NCBI RefSeq assembly: GCF_000315625.1
Contig: NW_005434663.1
Coordinates: 463,882 to 527,881, forward strand
From: Guillardia theta CCMP2712
Lineage: Eukaryota > Protista > Cryptophyta
Length of the DNA stretch: 64,000 bases
Direction: 5' to 3'
Shown here: piece by piece, positions 4,843 through 48,617 of the stretch
How positions within the stretch are numbered: the stretch's first letter is position 1
Layout of the letters: each line of letters begins with the position of its first letter
Position numbers and translations under genes: made by a program
Notes under the pieces: model-generated
Told to the model about the DNA's origin: nothing
Databases searched by the model: none
Seen by the model: the letters and a program-made list of their open reading frames with translations, nothing else

Positions 4843-5336
4843 GCTGGCCTAGAAAATCAAGATATGAAGTTGTACGGGCAGGTTACTCAATCATTAAATT
4901 GAAGAAACGATTCTACTCTGCAACCATTTCAGAGCCAGGGTGTTGAATTGATCTCTGATTCTACCGTCGGTCAAATCTTTTCAGGCTCATGATGATAACC
5001 ATGATAATTGTCCGACTGACTTTCCTGCTGGTGTGATCAACTGTGAGCAGTGAGCCATACTGAGGCAACCAGGCGTGTGCATGCCAATATGATCTCACTC
5101 TTATTCCGCGTGCAGGCGGCAGGCGTCCCTCGCCGTTGCTACCGTACCCGTTGTGTGCTCCAACGGCAGCTGTGCAGTGCTTAGTGAGGTGCCTACTCCG
5201 AACGGTCCGACACTCAGTGGCCGCAGCAGTCGGTCCGGTCGGCCCGGCCCGCCGGGCGGCCCGGCCGGCGGCACACACGGTACCAGGCCGGGCCGGCGGC
5301 CGCTGTGCGACGGTCAAGCTGAGCCGCTCCTCTAGT

Positions 5337-5381
5337 CTCCTGATTGTCCTCTTACTGATTTTTAACTTAACTTTGAGTAAA
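5337..5381 (+). repeat. Dispersed intergenic motif copy (…AACTTAACTTTGAGTAAA family)
   Basis: CTCCTGATTGTCCTCTTACTGATTTTTAACTTAACTTTGAGTAAA, near-identical to copies at 21427, 39601, 51870 and 52691. Confidence 0.9.
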
Positions 5382-6616
5382 AAGAGTATACTTCGACTCA
5401 GAGGGTGCGTTTACGGCCGTAGCGACTCTCGAGTCTTGCAAACAGTCGAGTCAGCGACTGCTTCTAAACTTTTAGTTAAATTTTGACGAGAACATTCTAG
5501 ACGAAAGGTCATAGATGTGACCGGGTGGTAATCATTGTGCCTTTACAAACCAAAACAGGGCTCTTTCGCTCTAAGGGGTGGATAAAATAAAACGAAAACA
5601 ATTGTTTTCGAAGAAAATCGTTGGTGGAGAGATTTTTCGCTTTCGAATCGATGCAATCTTCGATCATATGAAGATCTCCCTAATATGTTATAAACTTTGT
5701 ATGGTGAGCCCCCAGAGGTTCTGTGACATTCAAATCTACCCCCTTGGGGTATCATGGGGTACTAAGAAGATGACAGTACCGGTCCACAATGTTTCATCCT
5801 CTTCGAGGATCTTCCTACTAGTTTCACGGGTCACTAGTGTTATAAAGCTTCAACCCCCCCTTTTTTGCGGACAGAGTTTTAAAAGAACGGGGGGTCCAGG
5901 GCGAAAAATCTAGGCAGGCACAATCCAGGTTGGCGGAATTTACATGTGAATTTTGTCAAATTGTCTCCTGATATATCGGAATTATGTACATAAGTTTGAT
6001 TCTGAATATGGCTTTCAGCTTTCATGCGTAGCCATTACAGGGTCGAAAACCATGCAGGTTCGGCAAGGGGTAGGGCGCTAATCAGTACCGAAAAGTTTTC
6101 TTTCGGTTGAATCACAAAACTCTTAAAACGATTTAGGAGTCACTGTGTCATCATTTTCGAAATATATCTTATTCGAAATGTACAGAAAGTGAAAGACTAT
6201 CTTTTCGGTATCTGCATAAATCTCCACCGACTCCCTCTTAAACCATCCCTTGCAATCCCCCCCTTCCTCTCAATATACAAGCCCTGTCCTCTCATACAAG
6301 CACTCCCTTCCCCGTACATCACTACAAGAACAGTAGCCTCTTCCTCCCTGCCCCTCAATCAAGCTTCCATACTCGCACTTTGATTACGAATCTGCTTCTC
6401 GGCTTGCGTGCGTAGACAATCTTCCAGACTGTTCCGAATCCTTTGCCAGATTCCGCCTGGTAATCGTTCCCATCCATTGAGCCCTTCGTGACAAGGAATA
6501 GGGCGATTCTATTCAGATACAAATAGCATCTTACGATAAAGCCTGAGGAACTCGGTGTTAATCCATAAAGAGATCCCAGGCCCTTCGAAACGATTTTCGC
6601 ACAAGACATTCAGGAT

Positions 6617-7093
6617 ATGAAAACTCAAATCAACTATGGATCCATGAAGTCAACCAAAGGATTGCATGAAGAGGGCCTGGAAAATGTGGAAGACCTCCTA
6701 AAGGATATTGCTTCTTTACAAGTTGATCACGAGTTCAGCTACTCAAGCTCCTCATCCTACTCAAGTTCAGATGATTCACAAGAATGCCCAAGTTTGCTTG
6801 AGAGGAGACCCAAGAACAGGCATGCAATGAGGACCAAACTGTATTCCTTTCACAACAAGTGGGAGCTCTTGAACAACACTGTAGGACTGAAGAAGAAGCT
6901 GAACAACATTTCATATGATCCTTTCAAGAGCGCATGTGGAAAAACAGCTCGATTCCTGTTGACCGAAAATGGCAGACGGCGAACTATCTTTACACAGAAG
7001 ACCCCGAAGGTTGAGTGCATTCCCATGACACCGGATGAAGGCTGCGATCTTGATTTCCTCGCTCTTCCCATCGAAATTCAGTGTCCATCATAG
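6617..7093 (+). CDS. Hypothetical single-exon protein (158 aa)
   Basis: Uninterrupted ORF with Ser-rich middle and basic C-terminal half, followed by a pyrimidine-rich 3' region. No family recognised. Confidence 0.55.
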   Translation: MKTQINYGSMKSTKGLHEEGLENVEDLLKDIASLQVDHEFSYSSSSSYSSSDDSQECPSLLERRPKNRHAMRTKLYSFHNKWELLNNTVGLKKKLNNISYDPFKSACGKTARFLLTENGRRRTIFTQKTPKVECIPMTPDEGCDLDFLALPIEIQCPS

Positions 7094-42404: not shown

Positions 42405-43730
42405 ATGAAGTTTGGAGTTCCGATCTTGTCCTTCGCTTTCTTCTGCACACCTTTAGCTCTTTGCTGGCAACCTGCACCTCTTTGGTCATCAACGAATTCC
42501 AGACTCTTCACGTTCAAGAAATCAGTGCGAAGGGATGCATGTATCACATTCATTCGCTCTTCTTTGGAATCAAGCTCGGCATTAAAGCATATAGACCAGA
42601 TCGTCAAAGCTGTTCCGGTTCAACCGCGAGCAGTGTATTTCTACGATTTTCTTGAGGATGGCAGATCAAGTTTCTCAGAGAAGAACTGGATGATGGAGGT
42701 CGAGGACAAAGAATTTTCAAACGAGGAGGCAGGGAGATGGGAGTCGTTCTTCTTGAAGGACGTTGGTGTTGTCCGTACGCGCAAGTCGCATCCGGCGGAC
42801 GGCGGCCTCGGGCATGTTGTGTGGAACAGTGCTCGGGTATTATCTGCCCTTCTCTTGAACGAAGATTCAGACATGAAGACCAACTTCGATGGCAAGAGAG
42901 TCCTTGAGCTCGGAGCAGGCGCAGGGCTGATGGGCCTCTCCATCGCCAGGAAGCACCCTGAGGCTTCGGTGGACTTGACCGACTACCTGCCGTGCCTTGT
43001 TGATAACATCCGGGAGGTTTCCGAGAGGGAGAGCATGGAGAACATCGATGCCTGGGTCTTGGATTGGAAGAATGGGCTGATTCCCGGTGAGCGAAGTGTC
43101 ATAGAAAGTTGAGAGTTAGATCTGTGAAGGGATCGAGATGACAAGATCGACATCGACTGCGGTTGCTCTGACGATTGGTTTTGTGATGACCATCAGAATG
43201 GATTCCTCCGAGGACTTGTTATGACGTGATCATAGCGACTGATTGCATCTATCATCACATCCCCGCGGATTTCACAGCAAGTAAGCCAGCTGAAGCCTTC
43301 ATGATCCCCTCTCATACTTATCCAGCGGTCCTGAAATTCATCGAGCACAACCCCAATGGTACGTGTGGGCCAACTCCAATGCAGTGACGAGAGTGACGAT
43401 TGAACGTGAATGCGCTACAGCAAGGATCTTGATCTCATCTCCAAGCAACCGAAACGGAATTCCTCTCGTGGTTGATCGTCTTCAGATGATTGAGGACAGG
43501 TTGGTTGTGAGGGCGTGAGGGAGGTGGGAATTGGCTCATTTGAAGCTGTGCAGGCAAGTAGAAGTTCGTCAGCTGCAGATGATAGGCTATCAAGTCATCC
43601 CCGCTGTTAGCGAGGTGTGCAAACTCATCTTTGGCCCTCGGGTTTACCTCTTGACCAACAGGACGCCTCTGATATCCGATTCAAAAAGTTTGTTGATCAC
43701 TCAAATTTCACGCTCATAGACATCCAGTGA
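42405..43730 (+). CDS. METTL21/Methyltransf_16-family protein-lysine methyltransferase with N-terminal targeting leader
   Basis: GHVVWNSARVLS, GKRVLELGAGAGLMGL, LTDY, LDW, YDVIIATDCIY. Signal peptide followed by W and a Ser/Arg-rich stretch. Confidence 0.82.
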
Positions 43731-46700
43731 AAAGTCTTCACCCCTCTCCTCGTTTGGCTTACCCTGGCTTTCGCCACCAAATCCTTCTTGTGGAGAAGCT
43801 GGCTCATCAACTTGTTACCATCCTCAAGAGCATCAGGACAAAATTCGTACATGTGGTCAGCAGCCCCTTGCTGGCTGTCCTGCTGTGTCACCAAAGGAGA
43901 AAATCTGTACGAGACTCAATTTGAAGAATGACGAGATGAAACAAGAGAAATCGAACCGAATCTCTTTAGCTTGCAAGCAGAGCTCCTGTTCACCATGGTC
44001 AGAGATTCTATACGATAGGTTGTATCGTTACAACAAATAATCAGAAGCACGTCTTTGCCTCAGTCCTCCCTCCCCCTCCCGCACAATTCAACAGTCTTTG
44101 TCTCTTTGATGAGAAAAGAAAGCAAAATCGCAAAATTGCACAGAACAATTCATATCACCCTCTTACATACACTCTCAACTTTCCCTTCTCCTTTCAACAC
44201 ATCATCGTACCCCTTTCGCTTCCCAGTCATCCACAAGTTCCTTTGCTGCAAATGTCTTGTTGTCTCTGTACATTTCATCACCAATGACAGAACTCCCTTC
44301 ATAAGCCATCTGAGCTCGAATTTGATGAGTCCTGCCGGTAAGGAGTTGGATCTCAGCTTCATACACAAATTCTTCATCTGTGCAACAGTGAGAACAAATT
44401 GAGATCATTGAGATGTGAGCTATGACCATCTAAAATCTTTCGGACTGTCCGACAAAGGGAAGAAACAGGGATTCTTGTTGTTTGCGAGACGTTCAACTTA
44501 CACTGCAACCAAGAGCGGCAGACGGGAAATCTGCTCACAACCTTCGGGCTGAAAGTTGAAGGCTGACAACAGAGGTGAGCAAACTTACAAAAGCGCCAAG
44601 GCGTTGGTATACCTTCATGTAGTGAACGTACAACCCGATCTTCGGTCGCTCCCTTGTCAACATGAGATAGGTCTTCCTGATTTTCTTCTCCCTCATCTTC
44701 TTATAGAAGTGCGTCTTCGTTGGAAGGGAAATTCTAATCTCAATGCGCAGCAACAACACAAACTTTCAATGTCACCTTGAATTGATGTGTCCGAGCAAAC
44801 ACCATGATTCCATGAGTTGGCGTGTCAAGTCTGTGCAAGGTGTACACGCTGCCTTTGATTGTTCTCTGCAAGCAGGCAAAACAAGTCTCCCAGATATTGT
44901 CTGCTCGCGGGATGGACGGGACTCCCCCCGGTTTGTCCACAATACAGTAATGTTCTGTCTCAGATCAGGTCAGATAAAGGTTAAAAAGAGCCACCATGGC
45001 TACTTACCACAGACGTCAATCAGTCTATCAGTCCAATTTGTCTTGGATGCAGCAGAAAAACGCTTCGGGCTCGCGTAGACGCAAATCATTTCTCCTTGAT
45101 GCAACTTGCGATCTTATGACAAAAGATGTCACCGACATCTTCATCATCAGCACAACCATCAATCCATCATCCTATCAACACCAGCAACAACACCTCGGCA
45201 CAAACTTCAGTCGCACTAGTGACATGCACAATCATCCTTGAAATGTACACCTTTTGTAAGCCGATCTTTCTCATCCCAGACCGCCCCCAGTCTCATCAGG
45301 GTCCGAGCTTTTGCTGCCGTTACGGACAAACATTTCCGAACAAGTCGGCTTGCAAGGACAGCTTTCGTTTTGTAAGCTTGAAAGATTCTGACATCAGATT
45401 TCTCATCGAACGTAAAGGATGAATTCCTGCTGCAAAACAAATCAAAACATGTTTGAGGGGTTCTGCCACTATTTCACCTCCATGTCGGAAAATCTTTCAG
45501 AGCTTCAAGCACCGGTCGGTCGATGGTCTGCAAAGACGATAAGAACTCTTCCGTGCGTGTGGCATGTGGTTCATGAGAGCAGCAATAAGAGAATATCAAC
45601 TGCAACTGTACCTTTCCAAGCTCAAAGATCTTCGCCACTAATAGTGATCTAAAATGCGTTCTCTTCAGACTGAACGTGTAACCAAAATGGCATCACTACC
45701 TTCTCTTCCCGATATCAGCATCCTCCAATATTTGCAAGTTACACTGAGAGTGGTGTGAAGGAAAAGCACGCAATCGACATGAAGTAACTACCTTCCATTT
45801 GTCTCCCAAACGCATGAGTGCTTGACGCATGCGAAATTCAGCCGTACGACGTAGGAGGATTCCAAGTATATCATTCCATCTGCCCTCATTCACCAGCTCT
45901 GCATCCTCGTCCTTCCTGACCGTCGAGAGCTTGTGGAAGGCTGCGACACAGTGGACCAGGTTGTGAGCCGTTAGTCGAGAAGCCTTTGAACAGATAATGC
46001 GAGAGAGCTTCTCCAACACTGCATCATCCTCCACACCAAGAACTCCCATCGACCATAGCACAAACACCGCTCCTTGCAAATTCGCCATGTCGACATCCTG
46101 ACAAAACCTCTTGGCCAGCGCTTGAACGATCCAGCGCTCCTGACAACCAAGACTTGTTAAAGACCAGCAAATATGAGCGATTTCCCAGGGTTTGTATGCT
46201 TCCAAGAGTTGATCTTGATGACCGAAATGATCTATCAGAGACTGCAAGGTCGAGTCCTCCCCTCGAAATCTCAGCCTTCCCAGACCCATCAGCAATCTGA
46301 ACCAATCCTTGGCCGTCAGTAGCCCTTTCTTGGTGGAGTTGGAGTTGAGCGTCTTCAGAATCTTCTCAACCATGACGATCACAACCTTCTGGCATGACCT
46401 CCTCGTACTCAAGTATCCTGCTCCCTCTACCAGTTGCGACAGGCCCGCCACGTCCACCCTCCTGAAACTCTTCTCTCTCAGCACAAGGGACGCACAGACG
46501 TTGATTGAGATCTTATCCGGGACTCCCAGCTTTGCGATAGAATGGAAAGTCCTTGCCGCTCTCTTGGCTGTGAGCTCGTACAAGCTCTTGCTCAAGAGCC
46601 TCGTGATCTCCAATATGATTCGCATGTTGTCAAACCCGACCCGCGACAGACTCATCAGGCTATTCAACAATCGGGATAGCTGCTTGGTGTTCAAATCGTG

Positions 46701-47138
46701 TGCAATCGACCTGGCCCTTGACATGATCTTGCTCCGCAAATGCGAAAAAGGTTTGTGGTATATCATAATTGTTCTGTTCAACCCTTGTACCTCGCTGCCA
46801 TAGTCATCTACAAACATGAACTTCTTATTCTGAGAGGCCAACCTCGACAACAGGGAGAGAAACTCGCCCGTTCCGTTGCCAGAAGAGCTCGCAAGTTGGT
46901 GCATGATTCTCTCGGGGCATCGCTTGTAGTGTCGAGAAGACATTCTCCTACATGCCGCTGCCAGCGTTCCTGCACAGACCTCGGGATCCTGGACTCGGCG
47001 TTCTCCACCGCCTCTGAGAGCTGAGGCCCTCAACGATGCAGGCACGGAAGAGGACAGGAGCTTTGACTCGCCGCTAACATCTCGTCCTCCATCGAGCACA
47101 GGCAGTGTAATGATCGCCATTGCTATCAGCAGCCGCAT
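43697..47138 (-). CDS. Predicted fusion protein: signal peptide + LRGG leader, OPR-like helical repeats, S4-like segment, RluA-family pseudouridine synthase (3' end approximate)
   Basis: RluA motifs VDKPGGVPS, HRLD, LLTGRTHQIRAQ, VIGDEMY, LCLQAKEI. The repeat-containing ORF 45696-47138 joins in frame via introns 45649-45699, ~45427-45477 and one near 45115-45250. Confidence 0.78.
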
Positions 47139-47454
47139 CGCCCATCCTCCTGATACAATGTAGAACCGGCTGAGTTCAGTCCGATCACGCGGCGCCGGGC
47201 ACAACTTGCAAAGCTGAGCCCGGCCCGCCCGGCCGGGCCCACCCCGTGGCGCACACTAACATGCGGCCCGGCCCGGCCGCGTGTACCGGACCCGTCAGTG
47301 CACCCGGGCCGTCACTCCGACCGGCCTGAGTGCCGCTCAGTCACGCACACGCGGCACTCACTGAGCCGGGACTGCCGCTTTCACCCGCTCAGAGGTCCAC
47401 GCTGAGGATACCTCCTGAGGAGAACTCGGAAATGAGGAGGGTGTGTAGAGCAGC

Positions 47455-47484
47455 TTTACTCAAAGTTAAGTTAAAATCAGTACG
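47455..47484 (-). repeat. Dispersed intergenic motif copy (reverse)
   Basis: TTTACTCAAAGTTAAGTTAAAATCAGTACG. Confidence 0.85.
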
Positions 47485-47721
47485 GGAGCACCGTTCAACG
47501 GTTAGTTAGGTCTCCACGTTATGTCCCTCCAGGTCTCTCGGGACTCCATCGATGGAAGGCAGCAGTGTAAAGGGTGGGGTAGAAGAATTTCTTAGGAACA
47601 CCGGTTCTTTAGAGGTAAAAGAATGGGGACCGAGAGGGGGGGTGTAAACGAGTACAGGGTAGCCCCACCCTCTTTTTTCCACATATAAGACTTGGGAGAT
47701 CCACGCATAAACACGACGACC

Positions 47722-48617
47722 ATGCGCGCCATTCTTCTCATCGCAGCGGCCAGCAGCGCCTGCGCCTTCCTCCCTTCCGCCCCTCTGTCTCCTTCCCTTG
47801 GTCTCGCCAAAGCCGCTCATACAACCCTCCCCCTGAGATCTCCTGCACGCGCTCGCCATGCGGTTGGGCCCAAAATGCAAGTCCAAGAGATTGCTGACCA
47901 GGCCATGACCTTGGCGGCATATCCTCAAGGCCTCGTGGATGCTGTCACCGCGTACATGAACCTCTACGTTCCTTTGTTCAAGGTGAGCGGAGAGATGATC
48001 GCCTGCCTTCGGCTGATGAGCGATATGCAGGGTTTGAATCTTCCTCCTTTCATGCTCCACTGGTTTCACGCGGTGATAATCATCTGTAAGCTCAACTGCT
48101 AGTACTGACTTGAATTCTCGAAGCTCAACATGGGAGTTGTCCTTGCTAGCATGGGTACCTACGGAACCATCTTGGGCTGGCAAATTCGCCAGAATCCCAA
48201 GTCAGCTGGTGAGCTTGCTGTTGGTCCCAACCTCGGTAAGACCACTTCGGAGCTCCATTCGACTTTGATGGGAGCGATGGTACGAACGAGACTGTGCTAT
48301 GTGCTTTCACTAAGCATGCTTGACTCCAGGGTCTTATCTTCTTCCTTGGAGCAAACGGAGGACTCGTTCTCTCTCTCGTCCAGGACAAGCCGATCATGCA
48401 GTCTACCCACTTCACCTCCGCCATGGTCGGATTCGCGCTTCTTGCCGCTCAGGCTTCCCTTACTACCCTCTTCAAGGGCGGAAACGCCAAGACTGCAAGA
48501 ACGGCCCACGCCTTCTTGGGATCTGCGACCATGGGTGTCTTCCTCTTCCACGCTTACCAGGGCCTCCAGCTCGGCCTTGAGTACAGCGCGCCAGCAATTG
48601 TTGCTTCAGTGCAGTGA
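47722..48617 (+). CDS. Plastid-targeted DUF4079-family membrane protein
   Basis: Bipartite leader MRAILLIAAASSACA|FLPS; WFHA…LGWQIR, HSTLM, MQSTHF, RTAHAFLGS…HAYQGLQLGL; three short introns. Confidence 0.8.

Follow-up and report, generated by a model that had tools for sequence, protein, structure and literature searches.

Structure of the gene

The DNA analysed here, referred to below as the window, is a stretch of 64,000 nucleotides (nt) of Guillardia theta CCMP2712 (contig NW_005434663.1, positions 463,882 to 527,881 of the forward strand), and the subject of this report is a gene on its minus strand, running from window position 47138 to 43697, that joins an array of putative helical repeats to a predicted pseudouridine synthase (PUS) of the RluA family. 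This fusion gene is real, expressed and conserved, and it is mis-annotated in the reference. Its product would consist of four parts: a signal-like leader, approximately seven repeats, a short linker with the look of an S4 domain, and the synthase.

The structure of the gene was obtained by aligning transcriptome contigs from three separate studies (runs X1, X2, and X4) to window positions 43000-47700. The contigs carry GT..AG joints and are therefore derived from RNA, and an identical chain of joints on the minus strand is present in contigs of all three runs, giving 13 exons and 12 GT..AG introns of 48-225 nt. The features of the gene, with positions in the protein given as amino acids (aa), are as follows.

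45792..47138, minus strand: exon 1 (aa 1-449), with the leader, a conserved head and the helical-repeat array; covered by contigs of X1, X2, and X4, with ends at 47115-47143
46995..47138, minus strand: leader (aa 1-48), in which a Ser/Ala/Arg-rich stretch comes after a hydrophobic signal-like core (aa 3-15)
46719..46841, minus strand: conserved head before the repeats (aa ~100-140), from an alignment with environmental fragments P0010, P0022, P0083, P0058, and P0090
45924..46694, minus strand: approximately seven helix-hairpin repeats, with cores at aa 149, 189, 228, 274, 315, 352, and 389
45791-45744, minus strand: intron 1, 48 nt, GT..AG, stop-free and in frame
45700..45743, minus strand: exon 2, linker; joints 45743/45792 and 45648/45700 in X1, X2, and X4
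45699-45649, minus strand: intron 2, 51 nt; joint 45648/45700 in X1, X2, and X4
45612..45648, minus strand: exon 3, linker; joints in X1, X2, and X4
45611-45528, minus strand: intron 3, 84 nt
45478..45527, minus strand: exon 4, linker; joints in X1, X2, and X4
45477-45430, minus strand: intron 4, 48 nt
45251..45429, minus strand: exon 5, with the start of the S4-like segment (~aa 516, window 45362); joints and an S4-resembling pattern
45250-45113, minus strand: intron 5, 138 nt
45008..45112, minus strand: exon 6, where the S4-like segment finishes (aa 565, window 45075), and the linker to the catalytic domain; joints
45007-44955, minus strand: intron 6, 53 nt
44776..44954, minus strand: exon 7, putative synthase motifs I-II with the catalytic HRLD; PF00849 and TIGR00005
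44775-44715, minus strand: intron 7
44613..44714, minus strand: exon 8, putative synthase core, region of the K.Y motif; joints and a weak TIGR01621 match
44612-44563, minus strand: intron 8
44427..44562, minus strand: exon 9, divergent synthase core; joints, in frame, without a profile match
44426-44378, minus strand: intron 9
44211..44377, minus strand: exon 10, motif III, GRTHQIR and G.V.GD..Y; PF00849 profile positions 127-151
44210-43986, minus strand: intron 10
43957..43985, minus strand: exon 11; joints, one with its cut at +1
43956-43905, minus strand: intron 11
43851..43904, minus strand: exon 12; joints
43850-43799, minus strand: intron 12 (last), removed in X1 and X4 but kept in X2 record 5
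43697..43798, minus strand: terminal exon with both stops; open reading frame (ORF) 43697..43894

From the ATG at 47138, the reading frame stays open through 822 codons. The spliced isoform (X1 and X4) encodes 822 aa and stops at 43761-43759, while the isoform that retains the last intron (X2) encodes 860 aa and stops at 43699-43697; the retained intron appears to keep a C-terminal segment resembling the usual end of RluA enzymes. A preliminary description of this DNA, made from the sequence alone, had joined the two halves in one frame by removing a 51-nt intron at 45699-45649 and two others, and the single spliced mRNA beginning at ATG 47138 and the joint 45648/45700, present in contigs of all three studies, agree with it on both counts. 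Its three introns have become 12, including a 48-nt intron (45791-45744) that it missed inside its exon 1, and the gene end that it placed at 43697 holds for the intron-retaining isoform and not for the spliced one. The ORF lists and the gene caller behind the relative protein P0001 also read through intron 1 because it is stop-free and in frame. The lengths of introns 1-5 (45113-45791), at 48, 51, 84, 48, and 138 nt, are all multiples of three.

In the public annotation (scaffold JH992975.1, identical to the window across the 4.4 kb compared), exon 1 taken as a 502-aa ORF is 100% identical to GUITHDRAFT_102776 of G. theta CCMP2712, the second match being a 92%-identical protein on a metagenome contig. 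GUITHDRAFT_102776 is a 375-aa model (window 46724-45028) without a synthase domain; it begins at Met139, omits part of the linker and terminates out of frame, and no gene is called in this annotation across the catalytic exons of the synthase. A metagenome contig, L001, is colinear with the gene from 47156 to 44744 at 93% DNA identity; its exons are 95.0% identical (95% for exon 1) vs. 87.9% for the introns, GT..AG is kept in all six of the introns that it covers, and it is free of stops. Relative to L001, the ratio of non-synonymous to synonymous substitution (dN/dS) amounts to 0.39 in the leader, 0.21 across the repeats (aa 101-449), and 0.19 after exon 1. Given the latter two values and the one open frame, both halves are under purifying selection within that frame.

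That two adjacent genes have been made to appear as one through an artefact of assembly or read-through is scarcely credible. The 375-aa public model, which leaves the catalytic exons without any gene call, would suit such an arrangement, and contigs can merge neighbours, as one of them does with the convergent gene. The public model is, however, itself faulty in its Met139 start and out-of-frame end, the frame is open over every joint, in the relative L001 as well, and the gaps of 48-138 nt are all spliced with GT..AG signals in three independent assemblies. The successive gaps from the repeat exon to the synthase exons measure only 48, 51, 84, 48, 138, and 53 nt and are all removed by splicing, so that a terminator and a second promoter could not be accommodated.

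The N-terminal helical-repeat half

When 1.84 billion representatives were searched with HMMER for relatives of aa 100-449, 191 matches were obtained at E<=1e-3, the best non-self match having a value of 4e-20, and most of these show several matched stretches, as is typical of repeat proteins. FAST_1 was found in all but one of the 18 matches scanned, DUF6832 or DUF1601 in most of them, and RAP in four; precomputed family lists add RESC6 to these relatives, and a language-model search of the repeat half likewise led to families of the FAST_1/DUF1601/RESC6/RAP type. The seven repeat cores in the protein are spaced by 37-46 aa, and a profile of the 37-aa unit built from relatives gives a whole-protein E of 2.6e-7, with matches at aa 316-343 and 360-385.

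Profile scans of the Guillardia protein, here and below, were run on single exon pieces, and its fold was predicted for the first exon. The AlphaFold2 (AF2) model of the repeat half, from a 61-row alignment, has a predicted local distance difference test score (pLDDT) of 78.8 and a predicted template-modelling score (pTM) of 0.77, and is composed of 19 helices in hairpins only. Foldseek searches with this model identified the RESC chains 8fni/8fn4 of the trypanosome editing complex (8fni_6, E 2.5e-6) and 8a22_Xd at a template-modelling (TM) score of 0.58, plus chains of 7pkt and 9i05; besides RESC, the closest solved structures are those of lineage-specific repeat proteins from the mitoribosomes of Polytomella, Chlamydomonas, and Toxoplasma. 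Structural neighbours from an atlas of predicted folds are RESC6/FAST_1/RAP clusters (TM 0.56-0.67 by query among those rows) and include vertebrate FASTKD1 and FASTKD4. In the Chlamydomonas mitoribosome, fragments of ribosomal RNA (rRNA) are held by OPR proteins (PMC8660880).

Sequence matches, predicted fold, and structural neighbours thus support a place for the N-terminal half among the organellar helical-repeat proteins of the OPR/HPR/FAST/RESC6 class. The seven cores, the 191 family matches, and the profile and AF2 results sustain the earlier proposal of about seven repeats of OPR/FAST-RAP type, and the OPR-like solenoid that it entailed is recovered in a broad sense, as an all-helical model whose Foldseek neighbours are RESC and mitoribosomal repeat proteins. 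No match to RAP (PF08373) or FAST_2 (PF08368) was obtained with any exon piece at E<=1. With both of these domains absent from its sequence, the predicted protein is not a member of the FASTK family in the strict sense.

The head that precedes the repeats has the motif D..G..V.GLN.T...YHKPF..R, in which D, G, GLN.T, H.PF, and R are invariant. It has no known family, AF2 confidence is low over it, and metagenome fragments from the sea and from fresh water resemble it at 21-28% identity; of these, P0010, P0022, and P0083 sit on contigs of 1.3-1.8 kb. Synthase exons were not found by tblastn or six-frame profile at eight metagenome loci (L005-L012; alignment A3), the contigs being so short that the result is uninformative either way. 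The longest contig, L007, is probably chimeric: over positions 5100-6925, its GC-rich eukaryote-like gene gives way to a CA/TA microsatellite, and this in turn to foreign-looking, AT-rich DNA in which the ORFs are unrelated.

The S4-like segment and the synthase half

Exon 7 matches PF00849 at 36.4 bits vs. a cut-off of 26.8, and TIGR00005 at an E of 2.4e-10, while exon 10 scores 24.5 bits at the end of the PF00849 profile and matches TIGR00005 at 1.1e-8. The HRLD motif occupies aa 628-631 (window 44835-44824), with the catalytic Asp631 at 44826-44824, and GRTHQIR occupies aa 741-747. When single exon pieces were searched against sequences of the PDB, nothing was returned at default settings, and weak yet consistent alignments to RluA and RluD appeared at E<=10; in these, HRLD aligns to the same motif of Escherichia coli RluA (2i82) and GRTHQIR to that of RluD (1prz, 1v9f). 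This half keeps both the Arg and the catalytic Asp of HRLD, the Tyr of K.Y, and GRTHQIR. The profile match above its cut-off, TIGR00005, and the motif alignments support the view, already taken in the preliminary description from its intact HRLD, that the C-terminal half is a putative RluA-family pseudouridine synthase in which the catalytic motifs are intact.

Between the repeats and the catalytic domain, at ~aa 516-565, an S4 pattern is visible by eye. The TIGR00005 match starts at profile position 81 in exon 7, leaving approximately 80 positions for the S4-like part, and an atlas feature search placed one S4 cluster at rank 3 with a score of 0.84, a weak lead only. Neither PF01479 (at E<=1) nor any NCBIfam model was matched by the exon 5 and exon 6 pieces, which are partial, an intron splitting the domain.

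Retention of the catalytic residues, together with purifying selection, favours activity but falls short of proof, and the main rival to a catalytic role is that the protein is a ribosome-assembly or RNA-maturation factor, acting as a chaperone or scaffold with pseudouridine formation being dispensable or absent. Precedents are provided by the PUS-like assembly factors of mitoribosomes and by Raa2, which functions in the trans-splicing of psaA in Chlamydomonas and reportedly needs no catalysis. Moreover, the proteins structurally closest to the repeat half are stable constituents of ribosomes or other ribonucleoproteins (RNPs), and exon pieces align weakly to pseudouridylate-synthase-like chains bound to trypanosomatid mitoribosomes (7am2_BZ, 7aoi_XP, and 6yxx_EC mt-LAF3). 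This rival is nonetheless considered unlikely, though it deserves to be taken seriously: all four of the catalytic elements listed above are retained at a dN/dS of 0.19, in contrast to some of the dinoflagellate fusions described below, such as P0163, from which the motifs have been lost.

Repeat-synthase fusions in dinoflagellates

PF00849 is also present in eight of the 150 best matches of the repeat half, and a profile built from these eight fusions matched 613 proteins at E<=1e-10. Among the best 120 of these 613, 33 combine a repeat family with PF00849, and all of the named fusions belong to the dinoflagellates Alexandrium monilatum, Polarella glacialis, Symbiodinium natans, and Effrenium voratum. 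The uniqueness implied by the preliminary description is therefore not upheld, repeat-synthase fusions being frequent in dinoflagellate proteomes; no published description of a fusion between such a repeat array and a pseudouridine synthase was found in the literature.

The dinoflagellate proteins, whose database entries are uncharacterised, resemble that of Guillardia in having the repeat array followed by an RluA-type synthase. Unlike the degenerate Guillardia repeats, theirs are crisp 37-aa units; they have no PF01479 match and a short linker before the synthase domain, and their synthases carry an insertion after the KP.GW motif that is missing from Guillardia. Identity over the synthase domain (alignment A1) is 14.5-28% between Guillardia and the dinoflagellates, compared to a mean of 34% among the dinoflagellates, and their fusions rank 62nd or lower among the matches of the Guillardia repeats. 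Some of them, such as P0163, are without catalytic motifs. Because of the low synthase identity, the missing insertion, the difference in linker and S4-like segment, and the low rank of the repeats, the Guillardia fusion probably arose independently of the dinoflagellate ones, and common descent appears doubtful. It is a new variant within the known proteins that combine a repeat array with an RNA enzyme, the dinoflagellate counterparts having gone unrecognised so far.

Also among the best 120 matches, RESC6/FAST_1 repeats are joined to HD/PDEase, SAP, RRM, FAD-monooxygenase, and methyltransferase domains. Examples of such repeat-plus-effector proteins are P0155, P0162, P0164, P0209, and P0251, from other protists and mostly uncharacterised. 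Judged from these domain combinations, the repeat array appears to behave as a portable module.

An alternative view of the repeat half is that it provides a scaffold for protein-protein contacts or clamps RNA non-specifically, with the choice of site residing in the S4-like and catalytic parts as in RluC and RluD. Bacterial RluD indeed needs just its S4 and catalytic domains. In keeping with this view, the Guillardia repeats are degenerate and the N-terminal domains of FASTK proteins have been described as HEAT-like scaffolds (PMC12687428). A scaffold or clamp is, however, decidedly improbable, as the closest solved neighbours contact RNA in RNPs (PMC8660880) and the fusion recurs many times in dinoflagellates beside the RRM, HD, SAP, and methyltransferase fusions, which fits an RNA-targeting module.

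The leader and its possible destination

The leader begins with Met-Arg, directly followed by a 13-residue hydrophobic core; Kyte-Doolittle means over 11 residues reach 2.1-2.6 over aa 1-5, and the first Phe of the protein is at aa 92. Both the hydropathy and the lack of Phe in the first 91 residues accord with the signal-like N-terminus without a +1 Phe noted in the preliminary description. The leader is kept, with a 2-codon insertion, in the relative protein P0001. At the 5' end of the gene, an out-of-frame ATG at 47143-47145, 7 nt before the start, opens an overlapping upstream ORF (uORF) of 23 codons, which is kept in L001; one transcript contig begins at 47143, within the uORF.

A targeting function of this leader can be proposed from its composition, and so, more tentatively, can a periplastid or nucleomorph location, in line with a rule reportedly set out in 2006 by Gould et al. 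by which a missing Phe leads to the periplastid compartment. To our knowledge, every member of the repeat class that has been characterised works in a mitochondrion or a plastid, and this counts against a periplastid reading. On a rough estimate, the plastid stroma would be the first choice among several possible destinations, none of which is probable on its own; the periplastid or nucleomorph compartment would come a little behind it, the mitochondrion would be less likely again, and any other site would be improbable.

Cryptophyte nucleomorphs encode Cbf5, H/ACA guides are not detectable in them, and their pseudouridylation status is open (PMC6461891), and for this reason the periplastid reading is attractive, though speculative. 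A repeat-guided synthase targeted to the periplastid or nucleomorph compartment would modify nucleomorph rRNA or small nuclear RNA, taking the place of H/ACA guide RNAs. This is judged distinctly unlikely; if true, protein-guided modification would have replaced RNA-guided modification in a reduced eukaryotic nucleus.

The divergent neighbour of the fusion gene encodes a DUF4079 protein on the plus strand (window 47692-48102 and on downstream, from 47722; publicly annotated at 248 aa). The leader of this protein has the sequence MRAILLIAAASSACA followed by FLPSAP, with Phe right after Ala-x-Ala at the predicted signal-peptide cut (between ACA and F). This is a classical cryptophyte bipartite plastid signal, and it provides a contrast within the window to the Phe-less leader of the fusion gene.

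Proposed mechanism

The interpretation favoured here, and held to be reasonably probable, is that one nuclear gene provides a repeat solenoid which guides a tethered RluA synthase to the RNA of an endosymbiont-derived compartment. The solenoid would bind one or a few RNAs of that compartment, most probably rRNA or its precursor, and would hold the tethered synthase at defined uridines for their conversion to pseudouridine. One protein would thus probably both select the RNA and modify it. The synthase occupies the place of the RAP nuclease-like domain in other members of the repeat class, and the fusion would do in cis what FASTKD2 and RPUSD4 do as separate partners.

A number of points weigh against this interpretation. 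With respect to the repeats, the unit profile detects just two of the seven cores, the others being degenerate, and Pfam FAST_1 on its own is sub-threshold (12.7 bits, E 0.12, cut-off 27.4). We know of no recognition code for the OPR/HPR/RESC6 class, whereas PPR proteins have one. On the side of catalysis, some PUS-like proteins work without it, and mt-LAF3 and similar factors in the assembly of trypanosome mitoribosomes also give weak alignments with exon pieces of the gene. As for the transcripts, contigs can neither prove that every transcript is full length nor exclude additional shorter ones, one of them (X4 record 6) also joins the convergent neighbour gene, and the eight raw RNA reads (X17) are too few for strand or expression level. 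Finally, at 47100 another contig in all three assemblies departs into up to 255 nt that the window does not contain; the break lacks splice signals, and this branch would replace the first 13 codons, which encode the hydrophobic core.

Neighbouring sequence

The convergent neighbour encodes a Methyltransf_16 protein of 335 aa (window 42405-43730, plus strand) and has introns, likewise on the plus strand, at 43086-43195, 43281-43325, and 43497-43550. This gene and the fusion gene overlap at their 3' ends, and both transcripts occur in single contigs (X4 record 6). In the intergenic DNA, several contigs with unrelated flanks match a 31-nt island at 47454-47484, to a summed depth of 574 in X4, and the island behaves like a dispersed short repeat. 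No Rfam RNA family was found within the 64-kb window.

Significance

Organelles achieve site-specific RNA chemistry without guide RNAs by means of helical-repeat arrays tethered to RNA enzymes. The combination of such an array with a pseudouridine synthase would extend the principle of the PPR-DYW proteins to pseudouridine, and would present a concrete candidate for the pseudouridylation of RNAs in the endosymbiont compartments of cryptophytes. As the architecture recurs in dinoflagellates, probably by separate fusion, a selective advantage is suggested. A natural, protein-only pseudouridylation enzyme with a programmable look would also be of interest for engineered targeted pseudouridylation, and a faulty reference gene model is corrected.

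Comparison with known systems

The catalytic motifs of the Guillardia protein align with those of the bacterial enzymes RluA, RluC, and RluD, TIGR00005 matches, and the layout would be alike if the possible S4 before the catalytic domain is one. Unlike these enzymes, it has 490 extra N-terminal residues with the repeat array, and its exon 9 is divergent. With the OPR proteins of Chlamydomonas, the Arabidopsis protein RAP, the apicomplexan HPR proteins, and the trypanosome RESC proteins it shares repeat type and predicted fold; these proteins have either no enzyme domain or RAP, and none was found described in the literature with a pseudouridine synthase.

In the PPR-DYW editing factors of plant organelles, a helical-repeat array is tethered to a base-modifying enzyme that acts on organellar transcripts. 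The Guillardia fusion would share this logic, but it differs in repeat class, enzyme, and chemistry, and the Pfam scan of its exon pieces gave no PPR match.

The likeness to human mitochondria would lie in a FAST-type helical-repeat RNA binder working with an RluA-family synthase on organellar rRNA. This closest functional precedent works in trans: FASTKD2 and RPUSD4 belong to a module responsible for the pseudouridylation of mitochondrial 16S rRNA, in which FASTKD2 has been proposed to supply the binding specificity (PMC5737537, PMC12687428). The human system involves two proteins, with FASTKD2 ending in FAST_2 and RAP, whereas in Guillardia there is a single chain that lacks RAP and FAST_2 and has a sub-threshold FAST_1. 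In the "Rosetta stone" sense, the fusion lends support to the functional link proposed between FASTKD2 and RPUSD4 in human mitochondria.

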